Assembly: GCF_964204645.1 (NCBI RefSeq)
Contig: NC_134031.1
Location: 4,340,001 to 4,404,000 of the forward strand
Direction: 5' to 3'
Source: Tubulanus polymorphus
Taxonomy: Eukaryota > Animalia > Nemertea
DNA length: 64,000 nt
Shown here: positions 13,052 through 56,560 of the stretch, in pieces
How the letters are laid out: each line of letters starts with the position of its first letter
How positions within the stretch are numbered: position 1 is the first letter of the stretch
Translations under genes and position numbers: made by a program
Notes under the pieces: model-generated
The model's input: only the letters and a program-made list of their open reading frames with translations
What the model was told of the DNA's origin: nothing
Databases searched by the model: none

Positions 13052-14620
13052 CTGTCGATAATTAAAAAAAACATCGAAATCTTTACATGCAATTTATCGA
13101 GGTAATCTTCATCTGTCGATGCATTCAAACAAAATCATAAAACATAAGTTTTTAGGAACGCTTTTACCATTGTATGTAATGTCTCTTACAATTTGTTTTT
13201 ATTTTCTAGTATTCCAATTATTTTCTAGTACGGTGTTTTAACAATTTCATGATTATCATTTCATGTAACCTTTTCTATATAAAGGGCTATGATTATTCTA
13301 TAGAATAGCGCTATAAAAAAATAAATTATGATCATAAGCATAATTATAATCATATTTAGTATTATCATATTTATCATTAATATTAAATCGCATATAATAG
13401 GGGATGTCTGTGATTGAGAGTGAAAATCCTGGTTAAGCAGGTTAGACTAAATGCTGTACAAATGTGAATTTTCAGAAATCGCAAGCATAACATATACATC
13501 GATAATGAGGTAAAATCATGATTGATTTATAGGGTACATAATCATTAGAAACAGTACGAACAGGAACAGCCAGACCCACAGACTAATAAGTTCATTCTAA
13601 GATTATTACAACTCTACTATCGAATTCAACTAATAGCAATAAAACAGCGTCTAGGAAGCAAGGCTACAGTTCGAACTGCTATTAGATTTGAAGCACAAGT
13701 AAAATTGGATCTCAGTTTCAGAGATAAAATCTACAGGACTGTAGAAGTGGATCTATCTTATTTTCTAGCTCAAAAAGTATGAGTCTTAGCATAAATATGT
13801 AAATGTTCTCAGCAACAAGACAGCACATGAGACATGGTGATGTTTGGTCAAGCAGGTCAACTCGTATTCTATTGCCGACAACTTGTCCCTGTATTTTGAC
13901 AAGCTATTCACCTCACCTACTTATTTTTCCTGGCTTTGTTCGTCAGACATCAAAGCAAAAAAAAATGAATCTTCCTTTTGCGCCATCAGGTTTACGCGCA
14001 ACGGAAGATATTTTTGACATCCGAAAAAAACCTATTTCCGATAATGGTTCTATACACGCGACTTTTTTAACTTCGTTAATACCAGCCGCGATGCTACAGG
14101 AAATATCGAGAAACTTGAACATGATAAAAATCGAGTGTAGTTCAGTACATCGAAACTTAAAAAGAGGGACGAGTTGAATGGGTACGAGTTGAATGTTAAA
14201 ATCCGATGATGTTTCAGTACGGAAACGTAGCCGATTAAGAACGAAGTGCTGCAGCCACGTCTGAGAGTTGAAGCGGGAGATGCTACAGTGCACGATCATC
14301 ATCCTGTTCCAGCGACATCGTCGGCATTCAGACAATTAGACACTAATGAGAGCCGCATTTCGAATCGTAAGGGAATAGCTGAATACACAGGGAATATCGA
14401 CGCAATTACATCGAACACTACACACGATCGAAAACTCGAATCAACGTCATCGAAATTAATGAAACGACAATAAAATCAGAGATAACTTAATGACGATTAC
14501 AGCGCTGAATCAATGTTAGCGCTGATGCGTTACCACGGATCTGGGTGGAGATACGACATTGTAAAAAACTCCTAGATCGAAGCACGATGCAGACTGAAGT
14601 CCTGCAAGAATGTAACTTAC

Positions 14621-14642
14621 ATTTGAAGTTAAGATATGGCAT
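14621..14642 (-). CDS. Weak candidate alternative first micro-exon (MPYLNFK)
   Basis: ATG with phase-1 donor T|gtaagt; very short. Confidence 0.25.
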
Positions 14643-15413
14643 TTAAAAAAAAACTAAATCTTCTAGATTGGGGTCGACGGTGACCGAGGTCGTGCTAGAA
14701 TGCAACCAACATTTTGGGCTAAGATATGACAACTTACGTACATTTCGGAGGTTTCCGCGAAATTACTTCCATCGCGATAAACGACAGTTTCTATAATGTA
14801 TCCTTTAAACGATCCGAAAGTGTTTCTCACAATAACCAGCGTATAGAAGAGACGGTCATAAAACAATTCTTCACCCGAAAACGTTTCTCGTATATGGTCA
14901 CAATTTCGCTGATCTGTTTTTCAGGATGTTACCTTCTACGGGAGAGTTATTTGTTCCGGATTATCAACAAACGAACAGTCATACTTAACCGGCACGTTAA
15001 TCCCGCATAATTCCATCATGTCACTTTCCTTCGAGGCGCGCTCGCTTGCGAATTTTGTTCACGATACACGCCTACAAACTGTGAGCGCGGGTTCTCGGTA
15101 AGATGAAGAAAATCCTCGCCCGACCCACCGCTCGCTCGCGATCAAAAATTACACGAAAAACAATTACGAAAACATCTCACCGACCAAGGATGGGAGAACC
15201 TAAGCGAGAGCTTAGACTTGTTGACTACTCGCGGTTTGAGCGTTATCGGTTGAAGATCTGTTCACTGATTCGTCGAATGTCAATAACGTGAATAGACGAA
15301 CAGTCGTTTCGAATGACTAAAATCAATAAATCCGAATAAAATCGAATCATCCTTGTAACTAATATCGTTTGTCAACACACAGAGAGAGTGAACAAATATC
15401 TTACATTTACGTG

Positions 15414-15433
15414 ATATATAATATATTTACGTG

Positions 15434-15521
<88 letters not shown>
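15414..15521. repeat. (AT)n microsatellite
   Basis: Directly visible. Confidence 0.95.
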
Positions 15522-15522
<1 letters not shown>

Positions 15523-16291
15523 TTCGATATTCCACAGTTCGCGGTGAAGATCGTGAGTCAAATCATAGAAGGTGAAGTGATGTCAATGCTAAATTCAAAA
15601 CTTCAGCCTAGCTCAGTTCGCCTTATGTGGTAGGAAATATAACTTATTCTATTCTTACGATTCGGCCTGCGATCAGTATGCCATCAATCCGTCTAGGTCA
15701 CAAGTACAATCATGTCGAAAAGATTCCTGATTGAAAGATCGCAGACTTAAATGCTGCGATGATATGATCAGATCCTAGTCGACCTGAGTTAGGCGTTGAT
15801 CGCGAACTCTGGAGCCAGATCCCGAATTTTACAATCTCAGATTCATACAAAAAAAATCCATATTTCAAGAATGCTGCGCACTATCCCTGAACCTGATTCT
15901 TCTCGGGGAGATCAAGCGTTTTTTCCATACAGGATCATTTAAACAAATCCCCTTTTTCCGGCGAAATGTAATCCGCGTTGACGTTTTTCATTACGCATTA
16001 TATAGATAGAAGTTGTTTCGACGGATTCTAAAATTCAAGGACGTCAAAACACGCGTGCGCGCGGTTAACGATAAATTTCAGTTAAGTTTCCGATGACGCA
16101 GAAGAAGCAGCAGCAGCGAGGAGGAGGAGGTTTGCGGCTCTCTTACTCAGTAGGAAGATACATCAACGCCGAGATGAGATATTAAAAACGTGATATGAAT
16201 ATATATCGTTTGAAAGTAAGACACCTGTTTTACATGTGATTATGAGATCACAACCGAGATCCACCTGAATATATACGTACACCTTGACCCC

Positions 16292-16331
<40 letters not shown>

Positions 16332-21412: not shown

Positions 21413-21479
21413 TGAGACTGTAGCGATCGGACCGGTCCACGTCGGCCGACAGTCCCGAACACAGTTTGAATAAATCCAT
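21413..21479 (-). CDS. RASAL2: Putative alternative first exon V6 (MDLFKLCSGLSADVDRSDRYSL)
   Basis: ATG in ACGATGG context, 22 codons + 1 nt, donor CTC A|gtaagt, phase 1, CpG-rich. Confidence 0.55.
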
Positions 21480-22528: not shown

Positions 22529-22598
22529 ATATTGGTCGAATGTATGAACTCTTGTCTTGTTGTGAATGAATGTCTTGATATGTTTGCGAAACAAACAT
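22529..22598 (-). CDS. Weak candidate alternative first exon (MFVSQTYQDIHSQQDKSSYIRPI)
   Basis: ATG with phase-1 donor T|gtaagt; AT-rich context, so it could be chance. Confidence 0.3.
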
Positions 22599-23589: not shown

Positions 23590-23913
23590 AAAGTACTACG
23601 GCATATTGATAAAATGAACCCGATCTCTGGGCAAATTTGGAAATTTCCCACAAAAATATTGTTACATCGTCACTCCCTGTTTGATGAGTATTTTGTGTTT
23701 GTATATTTTGTACATTTTGTTGGACGTGTTTGTGAAATACTCACCGGGACTAAAGTACTACGGCATATTGATAAAATGAACCCGATCTCCGAGCAAATTT
23801 TGAAATATCCCACAAAAATATTGTTACATCGTCACTCCCTGTTTGATGAGTATTTTGTGTTTGTATATTTTGTACATTTTGTTGGACGTGTTTGTGAAAT
23901 ACTCACCGGGACT
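23590..23913. repeat. Near-perfect 162-bp tandem duplication that includes a splice donor
   Basis: 23590-23751 is nearly identical to 23752-23913. Confidence 0.95.
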
Positions 23914-23981
23914 CGGCGTTACCGGAGTACGAGCGTCGATCGTTGAACTTTTTACATAGGCATCCGTCGTTACTGCGTTAG
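23907..23981 (-). CDS. RASAL2: Symmetric 75-nt phase 1-1 (cassette) exon (xNAVTTDAYVKSSTIDARTPVTPSP)
   Basis: Polypyrimidine acceptor tttttctgtgtatttatag, donor CCC G|gtgagt, open frame, length divisible by 3. Confidence 0.7.
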
Positions 23982-26688
23982 CTATAAATACACAGAAAAA
24001 AAACAAGAGAATCAGAATCCTGTCGATTCGAGGGTCGTTTGGTAAATTTGTGATCCAAGCTGCCAACCTCTTAATAAAGTACCACCATGAATTTTCATCA
24101 GTAACATTTCATCGAAATATGTAAGAAAATGTTCAAATTAATCAGTAATCAACAGTAAGACCCTCGATAACATCTTTCATATTTCTGTACGCATCAAAAA
24201 AATCAAACCAGTTTTCTCATTACAAAATACTAACAAATAGTTACACTAACAGTACTGAAAATCAGGAACTGTTGGCAGCTCTGTGATCCCCCACGGGACC
24301 GTCCTAAATATCATCAACAAAAACAACTCTCGAGAAAGTTAGACGGAAAATCTTTCATGGAATCGTCTAATCATTTCGTAACCGACCCAGTTCTTTTTTC
24401 AATACACAAAAATATCGAACATAAACAGAAATAGCTCTCGGTCGCTGCGAATATCTGAAGAAGACTTACTGTCGCTGTTAGATTCGCCGTCCCATAAGAC
24501 ATATTTATGGAAAAAACAACTTAACCGACGACGCATTATTCCGCGATATACTAAAACGACTGCGACATTGCGGCTATAACCAGCAGCGCATTACACCAGC
24601 GCGAAATAACACATTTATCTATATCTAAGATGGCTGCTATAAGGCTATACAGTCATCGTTTATCTATCATTAAACGCCGATAACCAGCTATTTATAAGAC
24701 GTGAGTGAGCAGCATTGTTCTGGGAAAAGAATGCTACTTGAATTTTCAGCGTGAATACAACATTCGAAGGGTTACGCTCAAAATTCCAATGAAAAAAGGT
24801 TTTTGGCAAAAATTGATGAACTTACTTCCACCACCCATGGAAAAAAAAACAAGAATACGAAAACTCAGGTGTCGGGATAAAAAAAAACAGGTAGATAGTA
24901 AAGTTATACAGAAACAGGTGTTTGAAGTTGTTTTACAGAAGAACGGGGAACGCGAGCTAAGATAAACACTAATCTTATCATTAAACGGATAAGAGTTTGG
25001 ATAAGCCAACATTTCACACCACTGACTGATGAAAGAGAAGGCAACTAACAACAACAACAACAAGATCAAGGTATCTTCAGACACAGTTTTTGGCTACGGT
25101 ACATTTCACTCAGACCCTGAGATTCAGTTCAGTCAAATTTCAACGTTTTACTTCAAGTCGAATGTTCCTCCAAACCTTGATTTCTAAATGACAACAACGA
25201 AACTGGGTCGAAAAGCAGCTCGTTTGGCATCAACTGATTTCCTGATTGCCTGCTAGAACAATGTACCAGTCCACAATTCCCGCAGTCAGTACAGTAATCA
25301 AATCATTCTAAATTTGTCATTTCTACTAACTCAAGTATATTCGATTCAAGGAATCGGAGATGAGCGAATCGCGGCCGACGAAGGTTTTCCAGTGAACGAA
25401 CGGAACGCAGACAGACCGCAAATTGACTGAATAATAACAGATTAATGCTATAAATCCTGCCATTAACTCATTATTAGATGAGTCATAAGACTGTGTGTAT
25501 GAATGAATGAATGAATGAATGAATGACACAGGATTCTTATAGACGATATCTTCAACGCGCACCACCGGTACTGAGAATTAATGCAACCCGAGAATCAATA
25601 CTGTCTTCAACATCCAACAAAACAAAACAGTTCAACACGACTCAGACTCTAAAGCCATTAGAAGACCGAGGGGATTGTTATAAAACGTTATAAAATTTGC
25701 TAAGTGTTAAGATCAGCAAAGCGGTCCATCACTTAAATTTACTGTTACTAATACATAGTCGAGACTTAAGTTCAATAGTAGTCTGGGGTTCCTTAGTTGT
25801 GGGAACACCAATCTTAGACCAACTTAGTTCTATAGTCGGATTTAACAACTTTTGACCAGTGTTAAAATGTAAGACCACTTTTGGACTTAAGTCTTGAATA
25901 TGGAACTTGGCCCTGAAGTGTTAAGAATGGCTATAGAGCTGAGATGGTCTTAGACTGGTCTTAAGCCATGACTTTGAAACGGCTCCAGGGCCCCGGGTTC
26001 ACGGACTTATATTCGGAAAGTGTTTCAAATTTTGCGTTAGTTGTTTTTCGATAATCGCGCGGAAAAGATAACAAGCCAATCCCTAGATATTCCGAGCGAA
26101 GGGTTAAAGTTAATACCCGTTCATAAAAATTGGTTGGATAAATAAAAATGATGTTCAGTACATAATTTCGTGCGCGCGACATTGCTTCATCAAATATCAA
26201 TCATGTATAAATTGAATACGCAGCTAGTTGAGAATGCCAATTACGCAAGGCAATTTCAGAATTCATCTGATAACGCAGAAATAGATATATCAGAGCTCTT
26301 TCTATGGTTTTTTTTTACTGAATATGCTAGCAGTACTGATTATACTAGTACACGGTGGCCACTTTCTGTCCGTTTACAAATCCCCGTGGTTTTCCCTGAT
26401 TTTTCCATGTTATAACAAAAAATTCCCCAAGTAAATCAGAAAAATGTCTAGGTTTTAAAATGTTACAATTCATATTCATTCATTTCTCAATGAATCACAT
26501 AGTCAATATGACCAGAATTCCTTGAGTTTTCCAGGTTTTTGGTAAAATTTGTCAGATTCCGTTTTCCCAGATTTTTTCTTGATTTTTTCAGATTTTTCCA
26601 GGTCAGTGGCCACCAGACCGTAGTACGAAATAAACTTAACTTTTAACTAAAACCTAACACGAAAAATATGCGTTCCATCCCCACTTAC

Positions 26689-26833
26689 CCAGACGTAAAC
26701 TGCCGATTTCGCGATACCTGTACTTCCGTTTACCGCGTGCGCGGTTGAAAAATCCGGACAACTTCGGATAACGTTTCAAACTGAAATATTTACTCGCCCA
26801 TAAAATCGGGGCCGATTTCCATAAATCGTCCAT
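26689..26833 (-). CDS. RASAL2: Putative alternative first exon V5 (MDDLWKSAPILWASKYFSLKRYPKLSGFFNRARGKRKYRYREIGSLRL)
   Basis: ATG in ACGATGG context, 48 codons + 1 nt, donor CTG G|gtaagt, phase 1, CpG-rich upstream region. Confidence 0.62.
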
Positions 26834-28377
26834 CGTCGCGAAGAAAAAAAAAAACCGAGATCTATTCTAATCGTAAAACGAGGTCGACGTTGACCGCGGA
26901 GATCATCGGTCTAATTTTAGTCGCGTAATCCGGACGAGAACATTTTTATTTTAGTCGCGTAATCCGGACGAGAACATTTTTGCGGCTTAAACCTAATAAG
27001 GTAGTCCTTAAAAAAACCCTCGAAGAGAGTCGTTTTTGAAATATTCGCCGCTCGGCTCATCTACCCGCGGAGACAAGTAGTTATTAAAATAAAAATCCCG
27101 ACGAAAGACGACGACGACGGCGTCTAAATGTCAAACGAACGTTCCCAACTCGAACGGCTAGAGCGAAATATCCTGGTCAGCTTCACCAGTACATCCCGAT
27201 AGGTCTTGTATCGATAAACACTGAATAGTTCAGGGCACTGTTCTGAGTTCATCTGATCTTCTATCCTATTGCGAGTCTGCGTAAGATAAGAAATTCGCTT
27301 TCGCATTTTACCAGCAACCGGTGAGATCATCGACGGTAGACCTAACGCTTAATACCCTCCATATCCGTAAAATCATCGCTTTTTTCCTTTCAGCAAAAAC
27401 ATTCATTCACTGGTATAGTGAGGCGATGTGTGGCTATACAACTATTTCAATATATATGATATCGAAAAGGTGCGGAAAAAATTGTTGCCAAGACAAAATA
27501 AACATCCTCGTTCCTCTTCGTCTTTGCTGAGAACTACTGCGGATATACGTACGTATGAAATCCATATAGTTACGTAATAATATATACGCATAAAAATATG
27601 ACTATCTCTTCTCGCTGCGGCGGCGCGCAGACAGGCAGCACTTCATCGTGAACTCATTTCAACTGGCGCAGAGATCGGTTATAGACTGATGGCTCGATAG
27701 GATGCGCAGTCATCTCGCTAACAATTCTATAATTCATGAATATCTCCCCTGATTGTTGAACTTCCGACGAATTTAGCTTCTAGATACGCCTTGTTTACCG
27801 TTTCGAAATCCGCCTACGGATGACAAGTTCAATAAGGTATCTCTACCGCCTCGACCTTTTTTGCGCGATTATCCGATGGCGAATTCGATGCCCATCGTCG
27901 TCGTCGTTCTCTTTCTCTCTCTCTCTCGTTAGGTCTTTCCCTCGTTAACGCTCGAAACTAATTAACTAAAACGTTGTCTTAAGAGTCGAGGTTCGGCGCG
28001 CTGTAATCTACGTAATCAACCTCATCCCGTATTCCGGACATTCTCGCTCGGATAAATGGCCGATTCGTGCGCTTTATCTATAAACATAGACCATCTATAA
28101 ACATAGACCATCGATATATACACGTCTGTACGTCCGACCTGAAAACAAGTCGACCTGAAGCAACCCCTCAACCTCGAACGCTCTCTCACTCTCTCTCTCT
28201 ATCCGAAATGCTACGCTATCATGAAAGAACTACGTATCGACGACGATTTAAACCCTGAACGTTTTCCATCGACGAATCAAATGATGGCATGACTTCGGCG
28301 ACGTGTAGAAGCTTAGTCAGTCATCGACTGGTAAATGAGATGGCTCATCCTAAACATAAGCTCAATGGTATCATTCG

Positions 28378-29253
28378 CTCTCTCTCTCTCTCTCCTTCTC
28401 TCTCTCCTTCTCTCTCTCCTTCTCTCTCTCCTTCTCTCTCTCCTTCTCTCTCTCCTTCTCTCTCTCCTTCTCTCTCTCCTTCTCTCTCTCCTTCTCTCTC
28501 TCCTTCTCTCTCTCCTTCTCTCTCTCCTTCTCTCTCTCCTTCTCTCTCTCCTTCTCTCTCTCCTTCTCTCTCTCCTTCTCTCTCTCCTTCTCTCTCTCCT
28601 TCTCTCTCTCCTTCTCTCTCTCCTTCTCTCTCTCCTTCTCTCTCTCCTTCTCTCTCTCCTTCTCTCTCTCCTTCTCTCTCTCCTTCTCTCTCTCCTTCTC
28701 TCTCTCCTTCTCTCTCTCCTTCTCTCTCTCCTTCTCTCTCTCCTTCTCTCTCTCCTTCTCTCTCTCCTTCTCTCTCTCCTTCTCTCTCTCCTTCTCTCTC
28801 TCCTTCTCTCTCTCCTTCTCTCTCTCCTTCTCTCTCTCCTTCTCTCTCTCCTTCTCTCTCTCCTTCTCTCTCTCCTTCTCTCTCTCCTTCTCTCTCTCCT
28901 TCTCTCTCTCCTTCTCTCTCTCCTTCTCTCTCTCCTTCTCTCTCTCCTTCTCTCTCTCCTTCTCTCTCTCCTTCTCTCTCTCCTTCTCTCTCTCCTTCTC
29001 TCTCTCCTTCTCTCTCTCCTTCTCTCTCTCCTTCTCTCTCTCCTTCTCTCTCTCCTTCTCTCTCTCCTTCTCTCTCTCCTTCTCTCTCTCCTTCTCTCTC
29101 TCCTTCTCTCTCTCCTTCTCTCTCTCCCTCTCTCCCTCTCTCCCTCTCTCCCTCTCTCCCTCTCTCCCTCTCTCCCTCTCTCCCTCTCTCCCTCTCTCCC
29201 TCTCTCCCTCTCTCCCTCTCTCCCTCTCTCCCTCTCTCCCTCTCTCCCTCTCC

Positions 29254-29297
<44 letters not shown>
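28378..29297. repeat. Compound polypyrimidine satellite: about 60 copies of a 12-mer (TCTCTCTCTCCT), then (CTCTCTCC)n, then (CT)n
   Basis: Directly visible; it generates the spurious SPSL/LLSL/EREG ORFs. Confidence 0.98.
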
Positions 29298-29299
<2 letters not shown>

Positions 29300-29848: not shown

Positions 29849-29924
29849 CCTTTTTATTTCTGACGTTATAAGCCGGCTCGTCGGAGGACGACGATGACAC
29901 GCATGATAAACTTTTTAAATCCAT
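29849..29924 (-). CDS. RASAL2: Putative alternative first exon V4 (MDLKSLSCVSSSSSDEPAYNVRNKK)
   Basis: ATG, 25 codons + 1 nt, donor AAG G|gtaagt, phase 1. Confidence 0.5.
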
Positions 29925-32805: not shown

Positions 32806-32971
32806 CGTGAACGTAAGCAGCGCAGCTGAACAAATCACCAACACGGTGCTGCCCCCTGCCGCACGATAACAGATTCATATCGCGGTGCTGCCCCCTGCCG
32901 GAGGATAACAGATTCAAATCGCTTGAATTTCGCCGGGAGCCCGAACAAGATAACACCTCGGCGTTACCCAT
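32806..32971 (-). CDS. RASAL2: Putative alternative first exon V3 (MGNAEVLSC...AAYVH, 55 codons)
   Basis: ATG, open frame, donor CAC G|gtaagt, phase 1. Confidence 0.6.
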
Positions 32972-35541: not shown

Positions 35542-35586
35542 AAGCTCAAGTGGTAGAGCAATTGCCCTGCAAGCGAGAGATGCGTG
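35542..35586 (+). pseudogene. tRNA-Ala(TGC)-like 5' half or SINE head remnant
   Basis: A-box/D-arm AGCTCAAGTGGTAGAGC and anticodon arm TTGC-CCTGCAA-GCGA; no T-arm or B-box. Confidence 0.35.
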
Positions 35587-36041
35587 AATGCTTTTCTCTG
35601 ACTTGTATCGCCCCCTATTAGTTTTCTTGTGAAACGTTTCTTAATCATATTATATCAAAAATACATAAAGATACATTCTTTATGTATTTTTGATTATATC
35701 TTATATTCTTCTCTTTTTCTCATATTGCTATCATCTTCTGCTTGTATCGTCTCTCTTTAATTTCATCGTATGTATTCATCATTATTTGTCTACCGTACTC
35801 ATATTCGTAACTCGTGTATTTATGTTAATATTTTATCGCATGTCATAATTCCTACGTAATTTGTGTATCATATGAAGCAATCGCATAACAATTCAAGTTG
35901 TCACTGTGTTACTTACTGGTCATTAATTCAAATCTATTGTTTAGATAATTGCTCGTAGTTCAAATACAGGAATCGAACGATATAAACACAGAATCGTTAC
36001 TGGGAACGTTCAGTACACGGAAGTTACGCTTGTTTTCTTAC

Positions 36042-36942
36042 CTGAATGAGAACGTTGCTGCCACAGGAGTCTCAAAACCGGCGAACCGCGTCTACCCCAG
36101 AACTCGGGGTCGACGGACTGATCCGACGCCCTCCTCTGCTGCGCGCGCGGTCCAACGTCCGGTTCGACCGACGACCGACGCATAGGGGAATAAATCAGTC
36201 GTTCGCGGGGCAGCGGCGGAGTTTCAGACGACTTGCGACGCGCGTTCGGCGACGACGAAGGTTTCGAGCAGCAGCCGCCGTTCGGATGATACTTCACGAT
36301 TCCGCGCGTATCCGGTTTTTGCTGGCAGTATTTCCTCAAATCGGGCTCGTAAGAAGCCCGCCGAGGCCCGGGACTCGTCGGCAGCAGCCTCTCGAACGCC
36401 GCGTAATGAGGATCGTACGACGACCGCTTGAAGAGTAATTTCTGGCGAACCCCGCGACTCGACGCCGGTTTATCCGCCGACGCTTTCCGTTCCTGCATAA
36501 GTTTAAGATCGCGATACAGATTCTGATCGGAAGAATGGCGGAATATTTGAAGCGACCGATCCGGTAGAACTTTGCTATCGTGCGGACTGTGATCGAATGA
36601 ACGCCGACAACTGTAGAAACCGTGGTCGCTAGAAATACTGAAACTATCGGCGGCGGCCGAGTCGTCGCGCACGCGTCCGCCGAGCAGTTGCTCGAAACCT
36701 CGATCGATGGAGCACCGCGTTACCATCAACTCGGGCATGCACGACGCCGTCCGGTGCACCGACGATTGATCGGTCGCGTTCACATCAAACGAACCCCGTT
36801 TACCCCTAAACTTCGGTTCCGAAGGCGGAGAGTCGACTCCGCTGTAGTCGACTTCAGCATCAGCGGCCGCCGAGTATTTCACCAGGCTGTACGAGCCCTT
36901 CTTACGATATCTATCCATATCGACGACGTTTTTCATATCCAT
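36042..36942 (-). CDS. RASAL2: Putative alternative first exon V2 (300 codons, RRxS-rich)
   Basis: ATG-initiated ORF ending in TCA G|gtaaga, a phase-1 donor; the junction would read HS-DTSYEK. Confidence 0.78.
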
Positions 36943-37514
36943 AAAACCGAGCGATTTTCGTTACGTCGAACGAGTCACGTTCGACGATTAATAAATTATT
37001 CATACGCCGCGACGACCGAACTGATGCGTCTATTCCGAGAGTACGTAATAAACATTTTAGTAACGGAGCTCGCGCGCGAAAAAAATCCTAATGAATATCT
37101 ATATCAACCATCGAAAATGATACGCGGCTGTAAACACTGGATTAATAATTCATAATAGAGACACGGAGATAGAGAACAGGCGTAATTGTGCAAACCAGTG
37201 CTGACAAACTACGATATCCCAAGACAATAACACTAAACAGTTGCAGCAGTATCAAACTTATTCTTTGTTCACCCTGCACTGTATGAGTGTATATTATGTG
37301 TATATTATGTATATATTACAATCATGAGCCCGAGAACAAAAGAATGACTTCACAATGGTCGATTGGTCTCGATCTCGCCGACCAGATAAGATTGTTTCGA
37401 CACAATTCGACGACACAATTCGACGACTTTGAGTGGATGAAACTGAAGATGCATCCGGATGCATTAACGATAAGAGCGTCGCGGCGAACTTTGCGGTGAG
37501 AATATACGCAAAAC

Positions 37515-37880
37515 ACTGAAATCAGGCGGCAGTACCGGCAGATGAAATCTATGAAATCCGCAAAATGGTCAAATTTTCCCAGCTTAGAATTGATGTATTT
37601 TTTTCAAACGTATAACGAAGCTTATATAACACGGCAAAAGTAACACCGAAATGGGGCAGCAATACCGGCAGATCAAACCATGAAATCCACAAAATGGTCA
37701 AATTCTCCTAGCTTAGGATTGATGTATTTTTCTCAAATGTATAAGTAACAAAGCTCCACAACACGGCAAAACGTTACACCGAAATTGGGTCACGGATCAA
37801 ACTATGAAATCCACAAAATGCTCAGATTCCCTTTGCTGAGGCTTGATGTATTTATTCTCACGTATATACAAGAAGCTGCA
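37515..37880. repeat. Three degenerate ~130 bp tandem units
   Basis: Recurring ATGAAATCCRCAAAATGGTCAAATT...TTGATGTATTT. Confidence 0.85.
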
Positions 37881-39064
37881 CAAGACAGCGAACTCTGATA
37901 CAGCAGCGACAAGTGGTTCTACGAACGCACAGTATCGCTACCCGGGTCGTCGCTGATTACAATGACGAAACATCGCCGGCGGGCGCAAAACATGAAAATT
38001 CGCCGTCTACTTCGTGTCGCGGCGCGCGCGACTGAAATTGCGCCCGGAACGTTCTCATTCGTATATACGCATCAGTTAATCCTATCTAAGTATTATATCA
38101 GCATCATATCGTCGCTCGGCGCGTGAAGACGCAGAAGAAGAACTACGGCTCTCGATGATGTATCCAACCGCTGAAGCTATGTTAATTAACTTATCAGGGG
38201 CATACTGGCGCTGTCATCCTGTTTATACAAGACGTCGAGTGTTCCTCGATTACGACGACTGAATTTTTTGAATAAATCGGCATCATATTCACGCGGCGTG
38301 AATTCCATCCTGGATTCGGCCTAGATCAATTATCAACATAAACCAGGTCCCTCTCGATCTATCTCTATAATCAACTAATAATAACTTCCTGGTCTCGCTA
38401 ACGAACGCAGTTCTAAAGTTCAGGCTAAACACTAATTACTTAATTACAGCGTGAGGTCTGGACGTTTTCATCCAAAAAGAAGCTTTCATAACACAGCCAC
38501 ATCGCTTATGTAAGCTGGTATCCCTGGATATCAAGACCAATAATCAGGATTATGAGTTTTACTCTGGTAACGCACTGCCCAAACAGTATCAGTTATCCCT
38601 AGATGCTAGACAGGTCATTGCCCTAACCATGCATATCCGAAACTCCTAGATGCAAAGCCGGGTACATATAGATATTATACGGCATCACCAAATACATTCC
38701 AAACTCGTACGGTAGTAAATCCCCGGGTAGAAAACTGGTAATTCGGAGAGATCATGAGATAAACCATGCAACACGAAACAATGTATCCCTGGAAACTAGA
38801 GCCGACTGTCCAGACTGTTAGCCGCGTTATACCACATACCACATGACGACGCACGCCAACTACTGTTCGAAAATGATAAGCAAATAGCCATCAAATTGAA
38901 TAGAACATTAACCCATGATATTTTCAGCGTAAAGGACAACTGTTCACGGCATACATCCCGCATGATAAATGTTCATCTTCACAATTGGCGCAAAATAAGA
39001 GATGTTCTGATCCGTATACTTGTACCATACAACAATTCTTGATGAAAAATGGATGTAAATATAA

Positions 39065-39482
39065 GCCGCGATCACACAAGTATTTTCGGCCAGTGGCAAA
39101 TTAGGGCCGGAACAACTGTTTACACGGGTGCCAAATGGACCCATGCCCGTTTGGCCCGCCCAAGAACATCGGACCAGGCCTGAGCCAAGCAATTAGCCGC
39201 AATGACACAGAGACGATTTGGCCTGGATCAAGCCAGATTTGGCACGTGCCTAATTAGAGAGCATTAAAAACCACTCGCTTGATATTAACCAACAAGCGAA
39301 TCAATTCTGGAACCAGTTTCAATTAATAAGCAGTTATTTGAACAGTGCTTAAATGAGGCCTTGGGCTTGCCCGACATTTTCGATCTGGTCAAAAATGCAC
39401 AGGCCCATTTGGCACCTGCAGTGTGTGAACCGTTGGTTCTGGTCTAATTTTGCATGGGCCAAAAATTCCATGTGAAAGCGGC
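39065..39482. mobile_element. MITE, GCCGCGATC TIR family (compound or nested)
   Basis: TAA flanks; a second TIR-like start at about 39195. Confidence 0.65.
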
Positions 39483-40696
39483 TAAAATACCACAAAATAA
39501 GAGATGTTTAGATCTGCATAGATACTTGGTTTGACGATGAAGAAGTTGAGCAAATTTTCCCGAACGAAAAAAGGACGAAAATATTGAGAAGGTACTGAGC
39601 TATTAGAACGTAGTCTAAAATTGGGAACTGACATCATGAAACAAGAACCTGTCCTACTCAATCATGATGGATATTGTTATGGCAAAGTTAAAACCCCCCC
39701 CCACCCCCCCCCCCCCCCCGGTTAAAACACGAGTAGCTGCACTGCAGAATAAACACGCTTAAAGTTTCTTGATATTCTGCGTTAGGTTAATAAAAATAAG
39801 CGCCTAATGAAATATCCTACACGTCTCTGTAGTGATTGTTTAGAGATAGAGCCAGGTAAAAATACCTCAACAAACAGTATCCCTAACCTTCAACCCCCTT
39901 ACCCAGTGAACTAACCATCAATCGACACGATTAAACCCTTCCCGCAAGAAGAAAACCCGATAATATTTTTGCAGACTTGATGCAACTGAACTTTGCGCTC
40001 GCTTATCATATATTCCTCGAATGCTGCTAATAATCGGAGAAGAAAATGTAAATTAGGTAGTCGTGTCATCGTGGAAATAAACATTTCATGTTAACTAGTC
40101 AAAACAAACGAACCCGAGGACATTGTTTGTAATATCAATAACATTATCTAAGTCAACATCGGTATGCTGGAAAAACCGGGTCACTGTGATGTAAGCAGGG
40201 CCTCGGTTTTAGTGGGTTACACTTTATACAGTGGGCCAGGGTCGAATAGAACTCAACTGTGAAAATGGCAACAGCGGGTATGTGGTGTTCTAACAAAATT
40301 GGGTCCTTGGTAAGTCATACAATAGACTCTACAGTGGACTCTGTTCTACAGTCCATGGTTATGGTTATACTCAGTAGCAGGCACTTGTACCCAGGTCAAC
40401 TCATACCCTATTGCCGACAACTGCATTTTGACAAGCTATTCACTTCACCTACTTATTTTCCCTGTTTAACTTTTGAATCAAGGCTATGTTTAACATCAAA
40501 GAAAAAATAAATGAAATTTTTGACTTCAGATAGTGGTTTAGATTATTTAAGTATTTTCTTATTTTTGTTAATACCATTGAGACGCTATATGAAATGTAGA
40601 GGTTAAAAGTTGAGTATAGTTAGGAACATTAGCCTCAGACTTAAACAGGGGTAAAAGTTGACCAGGTACGAGATGACTATATATCATTATACTCAC

Positions 40697-41903
40697 ATTG
40701 GAGTGGAGTTGTGACTGGCGTCTGCTGAACCGGGACCAGATCGACGCTGACCCCTCGCGGGTACAACCCCCGCGCCTTCCAGCGATTTCTCCTGCAAGCC
40801 GTTTCGATCATCTGTGTACTCGTTCCACCGCCAATAGGTGGCATGACGATCGCCGGTTTGTTGCCGCCGTGAAACGAGCCCGACAACCGACGTTCTCGGT
40901 TCTTAACGCAACCACTAGGGGGCATCGATCTTATGATGGGCGCGCGCGTGGCAGCGATCGTCGTCGGGTGAATCGGGGGGATCTCGCCGGAATCACACGA
41001 CGAATAAAACGATGAATCGAGTTGATTCGAATCACTCGTCGTATCTAGAATCTGATGGTATATTGAGTCATTGTTTAAACTACGCCGACGATGACGAGGA
41101 GGAAAGTTATTGAGACAAGTATCATCTACGCCGCGGTATTCATCTTCGTTTTTCCGCGCGAGTTTATTAAATTCGCGACTCAAGTTTTCGTCGAGTGCGG
41201 CCGCTGAGTCACACATCGTATTTTTCGCCTGGCGGGTGCCCGTAGTGAGAATGCGCCTGCGGCAAGCGGACGGTGCCGTAGCCCGGCGCGTAATCGGTTT
41301 CAAAAACACGAACTCGTCGTCTTCATCATTTTCGGCATCGAACGCGACGTGCGTGGACAACGGACGCATGAAATTCGCGTTGCTTCGATTCAAATTCGTC
41401 TTGTGACGATAATCCGATTCGTCGATCCAATCGGACCGGTCGCCGAAATCCCCGGCGGACTGGTTGCCGCCGGACTCGTACCCGTCGATTAAGTGGTAGA
41501 TCCGTTCGTGAACAGTGTCCCCCCCGTCCTCCCGATTCCGAAAATCGTCGAGCAGATTATGATAAACGTGCCCCGCGGCATCCGACCGGCGGCGGCGCCG
41601 ATCCAGATTCGCACCGATCTCGATCAGAGATTCGTATATCGGCTCGTCGTAGACGTCGTCCGGCGAACTGGCGACGCCCGACTCGCTCGAACACAGCGAC
41701 ATGTTCTCGCTCGACGTGTCGGCGGCGCCTGCGCCTGTATTCCAGCCCGGGTGAGCCCCGTAATCGTAACATATGTCCAGTAATTCCGCGTATATATGAT
41801 CGGCGGTCGATGAGTTTATTTTCGGATTCGAGTTCATCGCGTCTGCTGTATGCGTAGTCGTACGTCTGCTCGTAGCAGCAGCATTCCCTCGAGTTTTAAT
41901 CAT
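40697..41903 (-). CDS. RASAL2: Putative alternative first exon V1 (402 codons, disordered, rich in I/V-Y-x-x-L/I motifs)
   Basis: Long CpG-rich ORF ending in CAA T|gtgagt, a phase-1 donor just before the in-frame stop; compatible with the exon at 13051 or the cassette at 23981. Confidence 0.75.
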
Positions 41904-44900
41904 CTTCGTTTTTAGATTTCTCTCAATTTTCAACCGTTAAATTCCACGACATTTTCACATATACAGTCAGATAATCGATCCAATTAAGCAAATGAATTCT
42001 CAATCTGGGCCCAATGTTTATCTCAACCTTACGTGACCTATACGCGCGAAGACGAAATCGCAAATATTCTAAAATGGTCGCCGATATTCTCAGAATCACC
42101 GGTAAGAATGCTTTGATTGTATTCGCCCGGCACTTGACGGATTCCGACGAACAGGTCTTACACGCTGAATTATCAATCTGTTCTAGTTGATTTCTAGATA
42201 AATTCAAAGGTTTTCTGTGAACGAACAAATGAAGTCTTTGTTTTCGCTGTATGAACGAACGCGACGGTTTTTTGACTTACTGAATGTTTCATTCGTTCTT
42301 TCGAAACATATCTTCGAAGTCTAAATTATCCCCGGTTGTTCCTTCAAGGTATATTTTCTCACAGATGTATATAGACCACTGCTTCGACTGTGTGTGCTGT
42401 TCCTTCAAGATCATCCGTGAAAATGACGACATTAATTTGACATTAATTTGTCTAATCCGTGATTAATCGGCTAATTGTCAGATCTAATTAAACGTAGTTA
42501 GTGTTGACAGCAGGAGCCAGACAGTTTTCTATTGTCTCCGTAGACTGATCATCAAACGGTCATTAGTCCAGACTTCATGTGCATGAGTCTGTTATAATCC
42601 TATTAGCACGACCACAGCACAGACTCAAGACGCGGATTATTTGACCAAGGTCTCTCTCAACGCGCCCGCCACGTTTTAAATCCAATATCAACAGCGCGTG
42701 GAAATCCTCTGAGAAACTTTTCGACGAACTGTTTCTATAATAATCAGCCTTTTCGCGAACCTAACTTCAAATATTTGCCAAATCGGGGACAATATCGAAG
42801 GCGATGTTAGTTTTGTCCACAGGTGTTGTGGGATTTACTCGTGTGACGCTTAATTCCGTTGTTACAAAAGTTTGTTCTCAAATTACTCCGAGCGCAGGCA
42901 ATCCGATTAAAATACCTAGATGGATGTCTCTTCCAAAAGTTGACGTTAGCCGTAGAATCATCCGTTTTATTGTGCAACCAGACAATCTGTCCTATGATCA
43001 TCACCATGTAGCTTAATCCTTCCTAATTACGAAACCATAGATAATTGATGGAGAGAGGGTGGACAGAGGGTGGTCACCAGTGGTCAGTTCGTCTCGCCGA
43101 GATAATTAACCAGATGTCCGACAAATCGAATCCCCGCCATCACCCACTGATCAATCGATCAATCGCCTCGAATATGAATCCATTATATACGAATTCTCGA
43201 AAATTATAGGCCTCATCGGGGCGAATATTAATTACGAATAATCACGTATATGACACCTACGAGCCTCGCTACACGTATAGTTGCTACGTGCGTTCCGGCG
43301 AAATATTCGATGAAAATTCTCCCGTTTTCGCTCGCGACCACCGACAACCAATTGCTCATATCCGTACGAGCAAAATAGACGACACGACGTTCCGACGATA
43401 CGCAATTAACGAAACTAAAAAGCGCTGACTCGTTTCTTCATCAGTCGATCTGTCAGTCAGTCAGTCACGTCGACTAGAGTCTTAATTTCGACGCGGTAAT
43501 CGCGGTCAATATTTAATGAATGAATCATTAACTCAGATTCCTTTCCTCTTCAACGACAACGAATCGAACACCGAAGAAGACGACAGCAAATTTTCTTCTT
43601 CGGAAATTTGAGATGAAAAACGAAAGTTTACGTAGCAGACGCTCGGAAAATGAGCTATTTGTCCAATTTGGCCAGTGATGAACGAAGTCTTCGGCGACCA
43701 GTAATTCTATCCAGCCTGAAAATGAGCCGTTCGTCCAACTGCTGGTGGTGAAGTCTTCCCGGCCAGTAATTCTATCCAAGCCTGTGTTTGTACCGCACCT
43801 TCCGTGATTGTAAAAGGTTCCTGTGACAAAGAACAATGTCGCTCTCATTCACAGCACATCTATTCACAACTCCTGTCACAACCACCAGCAATCCTTAAAC
43901 AATAGCCATATATATAATGTAATATATACAGGAACAATGAATTAATGATAGCGGAAAATAATCAAAGCTACTCTCAGCAATTGATCTCCGATTCAGCCGA
44001 TTCTATTTGATTCAGAGTTTCAGCTAGATTTCATTACCATCGATATCTTCATCGTAGTTCCTTTGACACATTCATGTCATCCGATTACTATGAATTAAAA
44101 AACTTAAACTGAAACTCATTTTTTTTCGAAATTCGACCCCCGAATCAAATGATCCGATGCTATCGTATTTCGAAATTTCTAGCCGCGCTTTGATGGTAGT
44201 GATATATGCGAATTACATTTTTCGGTATTCTAGAAGTCGCGCGCGTGTAGCGCGGCGCGATGATTTACGTGGAAAACTTATTTCATATTCGAATAATGAA
44301 CTTTCCCGATCAAACGCAGATTATAAATGAAAAATAATCGCGACCCGTTTAAAGTGTTTTTTTTTGAAGAGGAAGAATTTAGCGACACCCAGAATTTATG
44401 ACTAGAGTTAAAATGAAATGCGCGCTTTGATCTGATATCGAGCGTGCTGTACTGATCAACCCCGTAAAAGTCTAAAAGCCGATACGATATGAAGAAACAA
44501 GACTGGTAGACTAATTCTAATCTTAGTATTTCAGAGTCAATGAGCTCAACCCACAGTTGATGATATTCTCGGTCTATTTTGGTCTCGGTCTAGTTTTGAA
44601 GTTTTGAATAAACTTTGTCAAAGACTTCGTCGAAAACTTCGTCATCAGAGAAACAAGAAAAACCAAGAAAACAAACATATTTTTCCTTGTTCGTTCCTCT
44701 GATGAACTGTTATATCATCGACCGCGGGTTTTGCTCATTAATGAAGAAACATACCCTGGATAGTGAGGCCGGCTTCGAAACGACGCCTGCTCCGCGTGAC
44801 CTCCGCTGAGCGAATATTCCGAAACTACTCGCGCTTCGCGATTAAACTGAATATCTGAGATCACTTCTCTTTTTTTTTATCTATAACCGATGCAAATACC

Positions 44901-52487: not shown

Positions 52488-52509
52488 ATCATCATCATCA
52501 GCGTCATCG

Positions 52510-52595
<86 letters not shown>

Positions 52596-52606
52596 GTCAT
52601 CATCAT
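52488..52606. repeat. (CAT)n microsatellite
   Basis: Directly visible; source of the poly-M, poly-I and poly-H ORFs. Confidence 0.97.
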
Positions 52607-55132
52607 AAAGCCGCCCGAAAACCCTTCACTACTACATACGCGCGCGACTCTTCACGATAAATAATGCCGCCGATTTTTGAGACGCACAAATGACTCTATT
52701 ACAGGAAACTGTCGTGAATGTGTGTCGACCTCCTAGAGACCGCCGGATAAATATTAGATCCATGAATAAACCAATAAAGATATCAACATCTATGAAAAGC
52801 AACATATAGCCTACCAATAACCATATACAGGCGATGATAGACTACGACGGGCCGTTCCAGTTCGAAGGAATTATGAAAAGTTGCTGAACGAGAACCATTT
52901 TCTTTCAATGAGTGACCAAAAAAGGTCCCTGGGAGAAACGACCCTAAAACAGGATCGATCAGTTTTGCGAGGAAACTGGGCCCCTAATGATACCCAAAAA
53001 GTAGCAAATGAGATCCTCCATTGGGCCGAAATCTGAATTTGGTAAATAAAAATAGTAGCAAAACTGGATGACCTGAGATTAGAAAAAAACACCTTTAAAT
53101 CGTGAATAAAACCATCCTTATTTCCGGTGATATGGCTAATTTTGTATGTAAATTCACACAAACATGAAATCTCTGTATTTCTGGGCAACAGCATTTCTAT
53201 CCTCGAAATTATTATTATTAATATACCACGTTGCAGGGGGCTTTTAACAATTCGGGAAGAATTCAGCCAATTACCCGACCGTTATATAGAAGCATAAAAA
53301 CATAAAAAAGAAAAACCATTAAAACCAACGGTAACTGCAATAGACCTTAGATCAGTTTGTATGCGGGTATTGAAATGCTATATAAGGGTATGATAATACT
53401 TGTATCCTAGCAGTAGCTAGTTTTATAGGCCCCCCGTGCACTTATGGACACGTGGCTATAGACAAAACCAAACCTAGTTCTATTTACACAATGTATGAAA
53501 AACCCCGCAGTCCCTAGACAATCTGTGTTATGTTTATACATGTATAAAAATACATGACAATGACACGCTAACATCTGCCCCACTACAACAGCAACGGGTC
53601 ATTATGATATGCTGAAATGCAGTTATGATACGCACTGGGAAAAATAGATGAAAATTTCAATGTTGCCATTCGCAATAATGCATAACAAAGCTTCATTTGA
53701 AATCCGTCGAAAATTCGACGCAGGGGTGGATTTAGGGGCTGGCCTCTGGAGTCCGGACCCCTGCCTTATAATTGAAGTTGCCCTTTTTGCCAAGTTCAAG
53801 ATCATCAAAACCTGCTACTTTTTCACTCATCTTTTTTTCAGAAATTTCATACTTTCGAACGTGTTTCTTCTAATATATCTAATAACGTTGGTGGGACTCC
53901 TCTCTAGTAGCCGCTTTATTTGAAAAAATGCCTTCTCTTTTCTTTTCTAGATCCGCCCCTCCAATGGAGATTCTCTTACAAATCTATACTCGAAATGGTT
54001 TCCGCTTTTCAGCAGGAATCTTTGCCAGTTGACTTCCGAATGATACTATTCCATCGGAGTCATCGGAGTCATCGAATATTTGATGATCTTATCTATCCCG
54101 ATCGACTATATCTCTTTCATAAACGATCAGGACATTTCTCAACGCGGCATATCACCAATACAAGACCTCGGCTTGACGCGAAGATTTCCGAGCGATTTTC
54201 TCACATGGGGCAAAAGGCAGAGGAGATCAATTGATTCGGTGCTAATGAATGTCAGACATGAAAGCTCTATCGCATGACAGAAAGAAGTCGAATTTCCTCG
54301 ACTCCGAAGTTGATAGCAACTGGTTCCGGATAGTTGACATTGACGATGAAGTCAGGTTAAGCCTCGATTATGGTTATATTGTAACTGATCTAATACATTA
54401 AAACTGATTTCAAGAATTATCATTTCTTAGATGTGGAAACTGTCCCTTTTATTCTTTTCATTCAGTGCGATTTGATTCACAAATCTACCACAGCTTCCAA
54501 GAGCATTAACAGGGTATAAAGATTTAGAAATCGGAAATCGAATAGTCATAGCAGAATCAAAAAGTCAGTTGAATAAACAGTTTAGGAAATCGACTGATTA
54601 GGGTTAATTTTGTTGGCTGCTTGATTTAATACACCCAGATTTGGATAAAAACTATCATAAAAGATTTAAGATTGTAGTCCTTATTGTACGTTGTGAAATT
54701 TGTGCTCTTTTACCGAGCGTAAAAGATTAGTAAGTGTGCAGAAAGTTTTTCTCGTAGTTTTTTTTAGACTCAGGTTGAGACCACGGAACGAAGCCCCGAA
54801 ATTGTGATATGACAAAACGAACGCGATTTCAATCGAAACATCACGAGCTGCGCAACTTTTACCAGCTGGGAAGTGATATCGCTAGACGTTCCAATAATAA
54901 CCCGTCATATAGGATAGCTCGTACTCTAGATCGGGACGCGTTCTCTATCATTCTACTCAACGAAGCTGAAACTGATCCGTACAGAGATGGACGGACATCG
55001 AGGACGGCGACGACCGCCGGAACTGTCACGAGAATCGATGATAAAATCGATGCACTGACAAATGATACGAACGTCAACGAGGTTATCATTCGAAACCGCG
55101 ATACTTACACGTACAGTAAAACCGTGCGCGCA

Positions 55133-55304
55133 TAACAAAAAAAAAAAATTCTGTTAACTCGACCTGTTTGTTCTTCGATTTCAAAATCAAACCCCCTGTT
55201 TCGCTCCCGGCAGGTGTGGTGGGTCTGTATGGGACACTCAATCAAAAAATCAAACGAAATTTACCAGCCAAATAGATAACAGGGAAATTCCCTATTGTAA
55301 GATC
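55133..55304 (+). mobile_element. 5'-truncated SINE/retro-like insertion with a 15-bp TSD (AAAACCGTGCGCGCA)
   Basis: TSD at 55118-55132 and 55305-55319; family copies at about 50280-50530, 22650-22760 and 57050-57260 (reverse). Confidence 0.75.
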
Positions 55305-55915
55305 AAAACCGTGCGCGCAGGGACTAGAGACTTTGCCACTAAGAACCCATATTGTTAACACTTACAACATTGATATCGCGCACTAAGCATTGAAATTTTT
55401 TTGTTGATGAGAATATTTTTTGTGGACAAAAAAGACATCTTTCTTTTCTATGATAAGGCATCATAAGATGAGTCTAGAAAATAAAAAATTTTGAGACCTA
55501 CATAAGGTCAGCTTACTCGCTGTAGGCACACAATTACCTTCAAGGTTTTTACCAGTCTTAACTGATGCCTGGACAAATATTGGGCCATTGTTGAAAGATA
55601 TGAAGTCCCAACTTAAAAATGTATTTGATGTCTTTCAGTTTAACATGTTCAGACAGGAAGAAATGGTTCAAAAACTGTAATAGACAATTAGTGCTGATCC
55701 TGTCTTTAAAATATGTTATAACGCACAGATGTTTCTGGTTTTTAAAAATTTTCTGTAAGAGGACCCCCAACCTTCGACACTGGTTGCTGACAAACAGCAT
55801 AAGCCCTTGAACTTTTTTCCTGATGTCTAACCAACGGAAAAATGAAGAATAGTCATTGAGATAGGATTTGAACCAGATAGCATCGAGAGACACTGCCACG
55901 GTAAGAACCCCTTAA

Positions 55916-56203
55916 CCCTTTCAGTGCGTCTACACCGCAGTGCGGTGTACGAATCAGTGATGGATTTTGCTAGTGCACCGCACTGCGGTGTATTGATTTA
56001 ATTAGTAATTACTAATTATCTCTCATGAAAGATGGCAGCCCCTGTCAAACATAGTGAAATATTAGTAACTAATGATATACCGCGCCAGGGTGTAGACACA
56101 CTATAGTGCTTTTCCCGTTATTCAATACACTAGGGTGGAATTTTTCAGAATTTTCAAATTATCTTCAGCACTATAGGGTATTAATTAGTCAGCACTGAAA
56201 GGG
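55916..56203. mobile_element. piggyBac-type MITE
   Basis: TTAA TSDs, TIR CCCTTTCAGTGC. Confidence 0.9.
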
Positions 56204-56560
56204 TTAAACCCTGTAGAGTCACTCCGGTTACTTCAATTATTACGATCTTCATCCGCCCTCAATCGCAGGGATCGCAACACGACGGCATCAAGACACAGAA
56301 TCCGAAACCTGCTCAATGTATAATGATAAATTACACGGGATCACTGACTAAATCCAGACGACCGCTTATTACAGCCGTACGATTTCCTCAGTGGATCTAA
56401 CCATCCTCAATCACTCGATCCTGACTCAGCAACGTCGACCAGTTACAAAACCCGGCGATTCAACTGGAATTAAACCGACTAAATGCTGCCGGACACTTCT
56501 TCATTAGCTGAAAAAAAAAATCCAGTACAAGATCGAAAAGAAAAAGATCGTCGAACTTAC

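Follow-up and report, generated by a model that had tools for sequence, protein, structure and literature searches.

The window, the whole 64,000-nt stretch of DNA analysed here, carries on its minus strand a gene whose predicted domains assign it to the DAB2IP/RASAL2/SynGAP family of RasGAPs. The original prediction had called it a RasGAP gene, and this identity holds: a Pfam scan of the exons flanking the large intron described below gave matches to PH_RASGAP, RasGAP and DAB2P_C above the curated cut-off, and weak, sub-threshold matches to C2. All features lie on the minus strand. The C-terminal half of PH_RASGAP is in an open segment with an exon at 7733-7984 (PF25321, 85 bits, profile positions 54-121 of 127), the weak C2 matches are at 7313-7714 and 6731-7030, and the RasGAP catalytic domain appears in two pieces, one at 4442-4600 (PF00616, 31.4 bits against a cut-off of 28.3) and one at 3942-4160 (PF00616, below the curated cut-off). 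A long disordered exon at 1215-2648 and the DAB2P_C coiled coil at 164-382 (PF12004, 33 bits) follow. PH_RASGAP thus precedes C2, and both are upstream of the GAP domain. The shared core exons span 164-7714, and the gene continues past the window start. Profile positions 1-53 of PH_RASGAP must be encoded upstream of 7984; exons 1-3, scanned singly against Pfam, gave no match at E up to 1, and exons 1-2 are ones that we take to resemble the N-terminal PH halves of vertebrate proteins. Orthologous loci have the same exon order as the gene described here; on an ENA contig with an orthologue, divergence prevented placement of the PH and N-terminal exons.

Canonical exon 3 (56561-56705, minus strand) ends in phase 1 at a GTAAGT donor, and its last base, G, forms an Asp codon with the AT of exon 4. 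Common exon 4 (12936-13051, minus strand; 116 nt) has a phase-1 acceptor behind a T-rich tract, ends in phase 0 at GTAAGT and is translated as xTSYEKALGERRGSVP... Between the two lies a 43.5-kb intron (13052-56560, minus strand), which contains all the candidate first exons and also a possible cassette exon of 75 nt (23907-23981, minus strand). The cassette would begin at a strong acceptor and end at a GTGAGT donor, both in phase 1.

Eight ATG frames in this intron had been proposed to end in phase-1 donors and to be joinable to the acceptor at 13051. All eight were confirmed on the minus strand; each is an uninterrupted frame from its ATG, is 1 mod 3 in length and can be joined in frame to 13051, as exon 3 can. 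The donors read GTAAGT or GTGAGT in seven of the eight. Two frames are long: leader 1 (40697-41903, minus strand) has 402 codons and a phase-1 GTGAGT donor, and leader 2 (36042-36942, minus strand) has 300 codons and, as the eighth case, a phase-1 GTAAGA donor.

Four better short candidates, all on the minus strand, in phase 1 and starting with ATGG, are found at 32806-32971 (55 codons, MGNAEVLSC..., A at -3, GTAAGT, CpG-rich upstream), 29849-29924 (25 codons, MDLKSLSC..., G at -3, AGG before GTAAGT), 26689-26833 (48 codons, MDDLWK..., basic, A at -3, TGG before GTAAGT) and 21413-21479 (22 codons, MDLFKLCSG..., A at -3, GTAAGT, CpG-rich upstream). The third has the most CpG-rich upstream patch of the candidates (94th percentile), and the donor of the fourth also closes a phase-0 frame of 198 nt. 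Four leaders begin with Met-Asp, as had been noticed before (36942, 29924, 26833 and 21479). The two remaining candidates on the minus strand are weak: 22529-22598 has a poor ATG context and a CpG-poor upstream region (9th percentile), and 14621-14642, inside a CpG-rich patch, has only 7 codons and T at -3. Three extra phase-1 ATG frames on the same strand were absent from the original prediction. The frame at 55366-55438 is probably due to chance because its upstream region is CpG-poor (2nd percentile), and those at 24826-25012 and 24470-24536 are probably chance frames because they belong to a common repeat and would encode hydrophobic, low-quality peptides.

When ATG-open frames of at least 60 nt closed by GTRAGT donors of the intron (n = 25) were sorted by phase, phase 1 accounted for 9, phase 0 for 3 and phase 2 for 1. 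Background alone would give 2.6 frames per phase, and the expected enrichment of phase 1 was thus borne out (binomial p ~7e-4). The wider donor pattern GT[AG]AG[TA] gave a 12/3/2 split for phases 1, 0 and 2, and on the plus strand each phase had just one ATG-open frame, of at most 45 nt. GTRAGT itself occurred 26 times on the minus and 8 times on the plus strand, against a Markov expectation of 19.5 and 13.4, so the strand excess is partly compositional. Recursive splice sites were rejected as the source of the GTAAGT excess, since AG with a pyrimidine tract precedes only 1 of the 26 sites (18770). The statement that the good candidates sit in CpG-rich patches also stood: the upstream 400 nt of the six better candidates contain 22-41 CpG, corresponding to the 66th-94th intron percentile, against the 2nd-44th for the weaker ones. 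An ATGG start was present in 5 of 12 phase-1 frames and in 0 of 5 control frames. We favour the presence of several real alternative first exons, given that phase 1 is in excess, that the ATGG starts are Kozak-like, that CpG-rich patches lie upstream and that the two long frames look like coding sequence.

It could be argued that no first exons other than the two long leaders are real and that the short ATG frames arose by chance in an AT-rich, GTAAGT-rich intron. Some 2.6 such frames per phase are indeed expected from background, the phase-1 frames starting at 55438, 25012, 24536 and 22598 are clearly chance-like, GTRAGT is biased towards the minus strand partly by composition, and the short candidates are known from sequence alone. 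However, 9 frames against 2.6 expected leave an excess of about six, not two, and the four better short candidates all combine a purine at -3 and G at +4 with upstream CpG at the 66th-94th percentile, unlike the control frames. We therefore consider this restriction to the long leaders rather doubtful.

The two long frames have coding character. They contain 419 and 316 open codons, against maxima of 309 and 265 in 500 dinucleotide shuffles, their GC peaks at codon position 3 (0.62-0.64, with A3 at 0.12-0.13), and the sole variant in run X2, GAC to GAT, leaves the amino acid unchanged. Both are single-copy in the 268-Mb genome, which rules out a repeat or transposon origin. Leader 1 contains five IYxxLLD-type motifs and RRxS sites, and leader 2 contains seven R[RK]x[ST] sites. 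AlphaFold prediction of leader 1 from its single sequence gave a mean pLDDT of 36 and no fold, and both long leaders look disordered. Pfam found no family in either of them. A phmmer search with leader 1 against 1.84 billion representatives returned one match only, a spurious one to a tandem-repeat protein, a word search with leader 2 found no homologue, and an exact look-up of the full leader 2 ORF found no record in a collection whose scope may exclude this genome's own records. These searches are a weak test for homologues, because no close relative is within reach; the best protein match even of the C-terminal exon of the RasGAP gene is only 42% identical.

Expression-like data were taken from the contigs of two non-reference public runs, X2 and X3, which by their features are probably RNA-derived. 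Their coverage of both long leaders lies in discrete blocks, at 36020-36956 and from 40609 to beyond 42015, with a depth of 6-59, and falls to zero at 37220-37619 and 40220-40419, whereas X1, a DNA run, has a flat depth of ~30 over this single-copy sequence. The coverage tracks neither GC nor restriction sites; the bin 38420-38619 is covered though it has no GATC or GANTC, and 37820-38019 (GC 0.49) is empty. In total length, the X2 and X3 contigs equal one third of the genome. No part of the stretch was present in X4, a single run guessed to be RNA.

Three loose contig ends fall exactly on GATC sites (39514, 40847 and 41599) and one contig begins at a GAGTC cut position, which raised Hi-C as the source of X2 and X3. 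One loose end leads 47 kb off along the same chromosome, another to a different chromosome. Among the partners of the loose ends, one is missing from the assembly, one lies on the same strand 5 kb past the window start, and others map to contig C2, where the joint shows microhomology. No ligation scars of the GATCGATC type were found at these junctions, which show microhomology instead, and we read the joints as template-switch chimeras, not as splicing. If X2 and X3 were nevertheless an uneven DNA library, whether Hi-C or biased shotgun, they would not inform on expression, and their read-through contigs would be silent on splicing. The GATC ends and the distant partners agree with such a source, and the library type of the two runs is not on record. 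The depth of 0-59 next to the flat X1, bins whose coverage follows neither GC nor GATC/GANTC density, junctions without scars and a total of only one third of the genome speak against it, and we judge a DNA library improbable; Hi-C in particular was set aside as less likely on the coverage pattern and the missing scars.

Within X2 and X3, neither joints nor loose ends were found at donors 40697 and 36042. Record 17 of X3 spans 36888 to 36020 and further, through the leader 2 donor, and records 13 and 22, from both runs, cross 40697 and the in-frame stop and extend to 40609. These read-through contigs imply that unspliced molecules outnumber any spliced ones in that sample. The junctions to 13051 or 23981 foreseen in the original prediction were not seen among these contigs, which, being Logan contigs, lose rare variants, so that a missing junction is not proof of absence.

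The same contigs bring up another interpretation, in which each long frame is a gene in its own right, intronless and lineage-specific (408 and 310 residues), both nested on the same strand in the RasGAP intron, with coincidental donor-like motifs and with short candidates that are due to chance. Contigs crossing both donors, and the leader 1 stop codon too, would be expected of such genes. Leader 2 coverage begins at 36956, ~14 nt upstream of the ATG, as for a separate transcription unit, and that of leader 1 reaches past 42015, although contigs cannot show true starts. Neither homologues nor domains were found for the two frames, as orphan genes would show. On the other hand, both frames carry a consensus donor in the exact phase of the host, within 11 codons of the stop (in-frame stops lie 6 codons beyond the donor in leader 1, at 40677, and 10 codons beyond it in leader 2, at 36010), and by a rough estimate under an independent-ORF model a donor of the required phase so near both stops has a chance of ~1e-4. 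Furthermore, neither AATAAA nor ATTAAA occurs within 1.5 kb downstream of the leader 1 stop, no poly(A) loose ends were among the X2 and X3 contig ends listed, and nested genes leave the phase-1 excess at the other donors unexplained. We regard nested genes as clearly unlikely.

With a probability of roughly 0.6, we explain the locus by alternative promoters within the RasGAP gene and their first exons, of which roughly six are credible. The 43.5-kb intron 3 would hold several internal promoters in succession, each serving a first exon with an ATG of its own. From each of these exons, splicing in phase 1 would lead to common exon 4 at 13051, perhaps with inclusion of the optional 75-nt cassette 23981-23907 on the way. 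Once translated, the leader set would comprise two long, apparently disordered, RRxS-rich peptides of 402 and 300 residues, the first with its IYxxLLD motifs in addition, and about four short ones of 22-55 residues, three of which begin with Met-Asp. Isoforms starting in this way would lack exons 1-3, by resemblance the first half of a split PH domain, and would retain the second PH half, C2, the GAP domain and the coiled coil. The earlier reading of an array of variable first exons is thus kept in part: the phase-1 excess, ATGG starts, CpG patches and long coding frames support it, and no junction was seen at the long-leader donors. Its count of 6-9 isoforms, its loss of the N-terminal PH half and its modular Ras-inactivation system are inferred.

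Protocadherin and UGT1A loci, to which the array had been compared, have numerous first exons that splice to one constant exon set, and a separate promoter is presumed for each. The alternative exons of those loci are paralogous, and each specifies a complete functional domain; the leaders here, by contrast, are mutually dissimilar and disordered-looking. Pairwise comparison and a MAFFT alignment found no similarity among the leaders, save a repeat common to two weak candidates, so paralogy of the leaders was rejected and the comparison was not upheld. Without similarity and with a disordered look, the leaders suggest ordinary multi-promoter usage, not a duplicated variable-exon array.

This design is already known for SynGAP-family RasGAPs, in mammalian SynGAP and C. 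elegans gap-2, and involves no new mechanism. In human RASAL2 and DAB2IP, the short isoforms presumably have an alternative first exon that joins just before an RRxS segment matching exon 4. SynGAP A, B and C come from alternative promoters; A and B carry peptides of their own, and no complete PH domain is present in C (PMC3621422). The proposed N-terminal variation by alternative promoters is similar, but SynGAP has three N-terminal classes against the six or more proposed here, and its A and B forms keep the full PH domain. For gap-2, passages in PMC3771449 that cite Hayashizaki 1998 describe 9 mRNAs made through alternative start sites and splicing, promoters that drive expression in different tissues, and isoforms that differ in PKC, PKA and tyrosine-kinase sites. 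Expression of a gap-2 exon found only in isoforms g and j is confined to the ADE neurons (PMC11168454). The gene here, also a SynGAP-family RasGAP, would closely match gap-2 in isoform number and in kinase-site-rich leaders. It differs in that worm exon use was shown experimentally, with transcripts recovered via the SL1 trans-spliced leader, whereas the present exons are read from genomic DNA, and in that two of its leaders are unusually long (300-402 residues). To our knowledge, no leader similarity between gap-2 and the present gene is to be expected.

Should the exons be used, multi-promoter N-terminal diversification of SynGAP-family RasGAPs, PH-truncated forms included, would extend over nematodes, vertebrates and spiralians, either inherited or repeatedly evolved, and the two long motif-rich leaders would be open to tests of whether they target Ras inactivation in an isoform-specific way. 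It is a long shot that the leaders form a localisation code replacing the missing PH half, by which one gene would send its common GAP core to different membranes and subject it to different kinases; the short ones (MDLKSLSC, MDLFKLCSG, MGNAEVLSC) would then act as N-terminal lipid anchors, and leaders 1 (five helical IYxxLLD) and 2 (seven RRxS) as phospho-regulated docking modules, which we know of for no RasGAP. The practical value of the locus is that of an annotation lead, with the caution that contig-level RNA data may contradict an attractive splice model. At the possible cassette exon, the intron contains a 162-nt tandem duplication (23590-23913), in which the cassette donor is repeated at 23745.

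The minus-strand gene in the window is a RasGAP, as proposed, and by its predicted domains belongs to the DAB2IP/RASAL2/SynGAP family. Pfam matches on this strand comprised PH_RASGAP (open segment 7733-7984, covering profile positions 54-121), RasGAP (4442-4600, which passes the curated cut-off, and 3942-4160, which does not) and DAB2P_C (164-382), with weak sub-threshold C2 matches at 7313-7714 and 6731-7030. Homologue searches were run exon by exon, and the long disordered exon at 1215-2648 showed at most 42% identity to homologues in the protein collection, one of which is named RAS protein activator-like 2. Exon order is the same at two orthologous loci on ENA contigs. The orthologous locus on ctg37724 of ERZ25767047 (L005 / L006) is much more compact, running from C2 to the C-terminal exon in ~7 kb; a gene called at this locus has internal stops under code 11, and the gene caller or code may differ. 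Pfam Ank matches at 62954-63909 (minus strand) show that an ankyrin-repeat gene has its 3' exons immediately upstream of where the RasGAP gene starts.

A GTAAGT donor closes exon 3 (56561-56705) in phase 1. Exon 4, which encodes xTSYEK, begins at 13051 and is preceded by a T-rich tract; the intron therefore spans 13052-56560, as originally predicted. All eight frames listed within it as first exons (ATGs at 41903, 36942, 32971, 29924, 26833, 22598, 21479 and 14642) were found on the minus strand. Each begins at an ATG, contains no stop and has a length equal to 1 mod 3, and four of them begin with Met-Asp as claimed. Seven of their donors are GTAAGT or GTGAGT, and the one at 36042 is GTAAGA. 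The predicted excess of phase 1 was also recovered. The intron has 25 GTRAGT donors, and ATG-open frames of 60 nt or more ended at them nine times in phase 1, three times in phase 0 and once in phase 2. Given a chance of 0.106 that such a frame ends at any arbitrary position, 2.6 phase-1 frames were expected (binomial p 7e-4). The wider pattern GT[AG]AG[TA] gave 12, 3 and 2 frames in phases 1, 0 and 2, and ATGG starts occurred in 5 of 12 phase-1 frames versus 0 of 5 controls. Of the surplus of GTRAGT motifs on the minus strand (26 versus 8 on the plus strand), only part is real: a second-order Markov model already expects 19.5 versus 13.4. Recursive splice sites do not account for the surplus. 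The better candidates do lie in CpG-rich patches, with 22-41 CpG in the 400 nt upstream of 41903, 36942, 32971, 29924, 26833 and 21479 (66th-94th percentile); the poorer candidates fall at the 2nd-44th percentile. The window corresponds to G000:C7:4340001-4404000 in an assembly of 268 Mb, and its CpG observed/expected averages ~1.15.

The two longest candidates, leader 1 (40697-41903, 402 codons) and leader 2 (36042-36942, 300 codons), have the properties of coding sequence. At 419 and 316 codons, their open frames are longer than any in 500 dinucleotide-preserving shuffles (maxima 309 and 265), GC is maximal and A depleted at codon position 3, and the sole variant within them in the public sequencing run X2 is synonymous. 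Each is present in one copy in the genome. Neither matched a Pfam family, and no homologue was detected, an absence that carries little weight because no close relative of the species was in reach. AlphaFold predicted no fold for leader 1 (mean pLDDT 36). Leader 1 has five IYxxLLD-type motifs, each within a predicted short helix, and RRxS sites; leader 2 has seven R[RK]x[ST] sites, and common exon 4 has RRGS too. Upstream of the leader 1 ATG, the probably transcribed region contains strong GTAAGT and GTGAGA donors at 42281 and 42363 and two tiny ORFs at 41951 and 41943; the leader 1 5' UTR may be long or spliced.

Sequencing-run contigs were compared over 36020-42015. Run X1, a DNA run, shows even coverage of ~30-fold. 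X2 and X3 share a second sample, and for neither run is a library type on record. They cover blocks at 36020-36956, 38159-38648, 39905-40055 and from 40609 to beyond 42015 at depths of 6-59, and fall to zero in 37220-37619 and 40220-40419. Because this coverage corresponds neither to GC content nor to GATC/GANTC density, X2 and X3 are probably RNA. Leader 2 coverage begins ~14 nt upstream of its ATG. The predicted junctions from 40697 and 36042 did not appear: X3 record 17 runs continuously from 36888 across the 36042 donor to 36020 and further, records 13 and 22, from both X2 and X3, continue past 40697 and then the in-frame stop as far as 40609, no joint was reported in this interval, and none of the listed loose ends falls at either donor. 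These contig-level data from one sample mean that unspliced molecules predominated in it, and they favor the view that the long frames are independent or unspliced units. They are nonetheless compatible with splicing, because such contigs drop minor paths. In both leaders the consensus donor has the phase needed for joining to exon 4, and a stop follows it after only 6 (leader 1) or 10 (leader 2) codons; for unrelated stand-alone ORFs we estimate this double coincidence at ~1e-4 from the motif frequency on the minus strand. No poly(A) hexamer was found within 1.5 kb of the leader 1 stop. Alternative first exons of the RasGAP gene are favored by the way donor, phase and stop are arranged, by the surplus of phase-1 frames and by the missing hexamer; we assign this reading a probability of about 0.6 overall. 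The two long leaders are likely to be such exons; each of the short candidates at 32971, 29924, 26833 and 21479 is as likely as not, or slightly more likely, to be one. The frames at 22598, 14642, 55438, 25012 and 24536 are probably due to chance.

The loose ends listed for the X2 and X3 contigs are not splice junctions: some lead into sequence missing from the assembly, one to a site 5 kb beyond the window start, and others to contig C2 with microhomology at the joints. We read them as template-switch chimeras. Contigs break exactly after GATC(G) at 39514, 40847 and 41599 into one common foreign sequence that was not found in the assembly; this suggests that chimeras formed repeatedly with some highly abundant molecule. 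One X2 contig joins 41972, 69 nt upstream of the leader 1 ATG, to G000:C7:4334978-4335007 (L003:1501-1530) on the same strand, 5 kb past the window start and probably where this RasGAP gene has its 3' end. This joint is non-canonical with 2-nt microhomology, and either template switching at the 5' end of an RNA or a back-join could explain it. Between the long leaders, the single-copy 490-nt block at 38159-38648 (X2 and X3 depth 8-24, identical ends in both) lacks both a long ORF and terminal splice sites, and may be a non-coding transcript or enhancer RNA. The element at 39020-39514, also deeply covered by X2 and X3, is repeated: word depth over 39020-39219 in the DNA run is ~3700 versus ~30 in the flanks, or ~120 copies.

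Alternative promoters that vary the N-terminus are already established in the SynGAP-type RasGAP family. In SynGAP, alternative promoters give rise to A, B and C, of which C is without a complete PH domain (PMC3621422). C. elegans gap-2 yields nine mRNAs from alternative start sites, with tissue-specific promoters and isoforms differing in kinase sites (PMC3771449, citing Hayashizaki 1998); an isoform-specific exon of gap-2 acts in one neuron pair (PMC11168454). The suggested likeness to protocadherin and UGT1 arrays does not hold, because the leaders are not paralogues of one another.

Elsewhere in intron 3, a candidate 75-nt minus-strand exon at 23981-23907, in phase 1 at both ends, could plausibly serve as an optional cassette. 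A 162-nt tandem duplication (23590-23913, 97% identity) copies its donor end, so that the donor GTGAGTATTT occurs identically at both 23907 and 23745. A 923-nt microsatellite at 28374-29296, (TTCTCTCTCTCC) x ~77 with 95% identity, produces spurious ORFs of 330-356 codons across four frames as well as a strong spike in GC skew.
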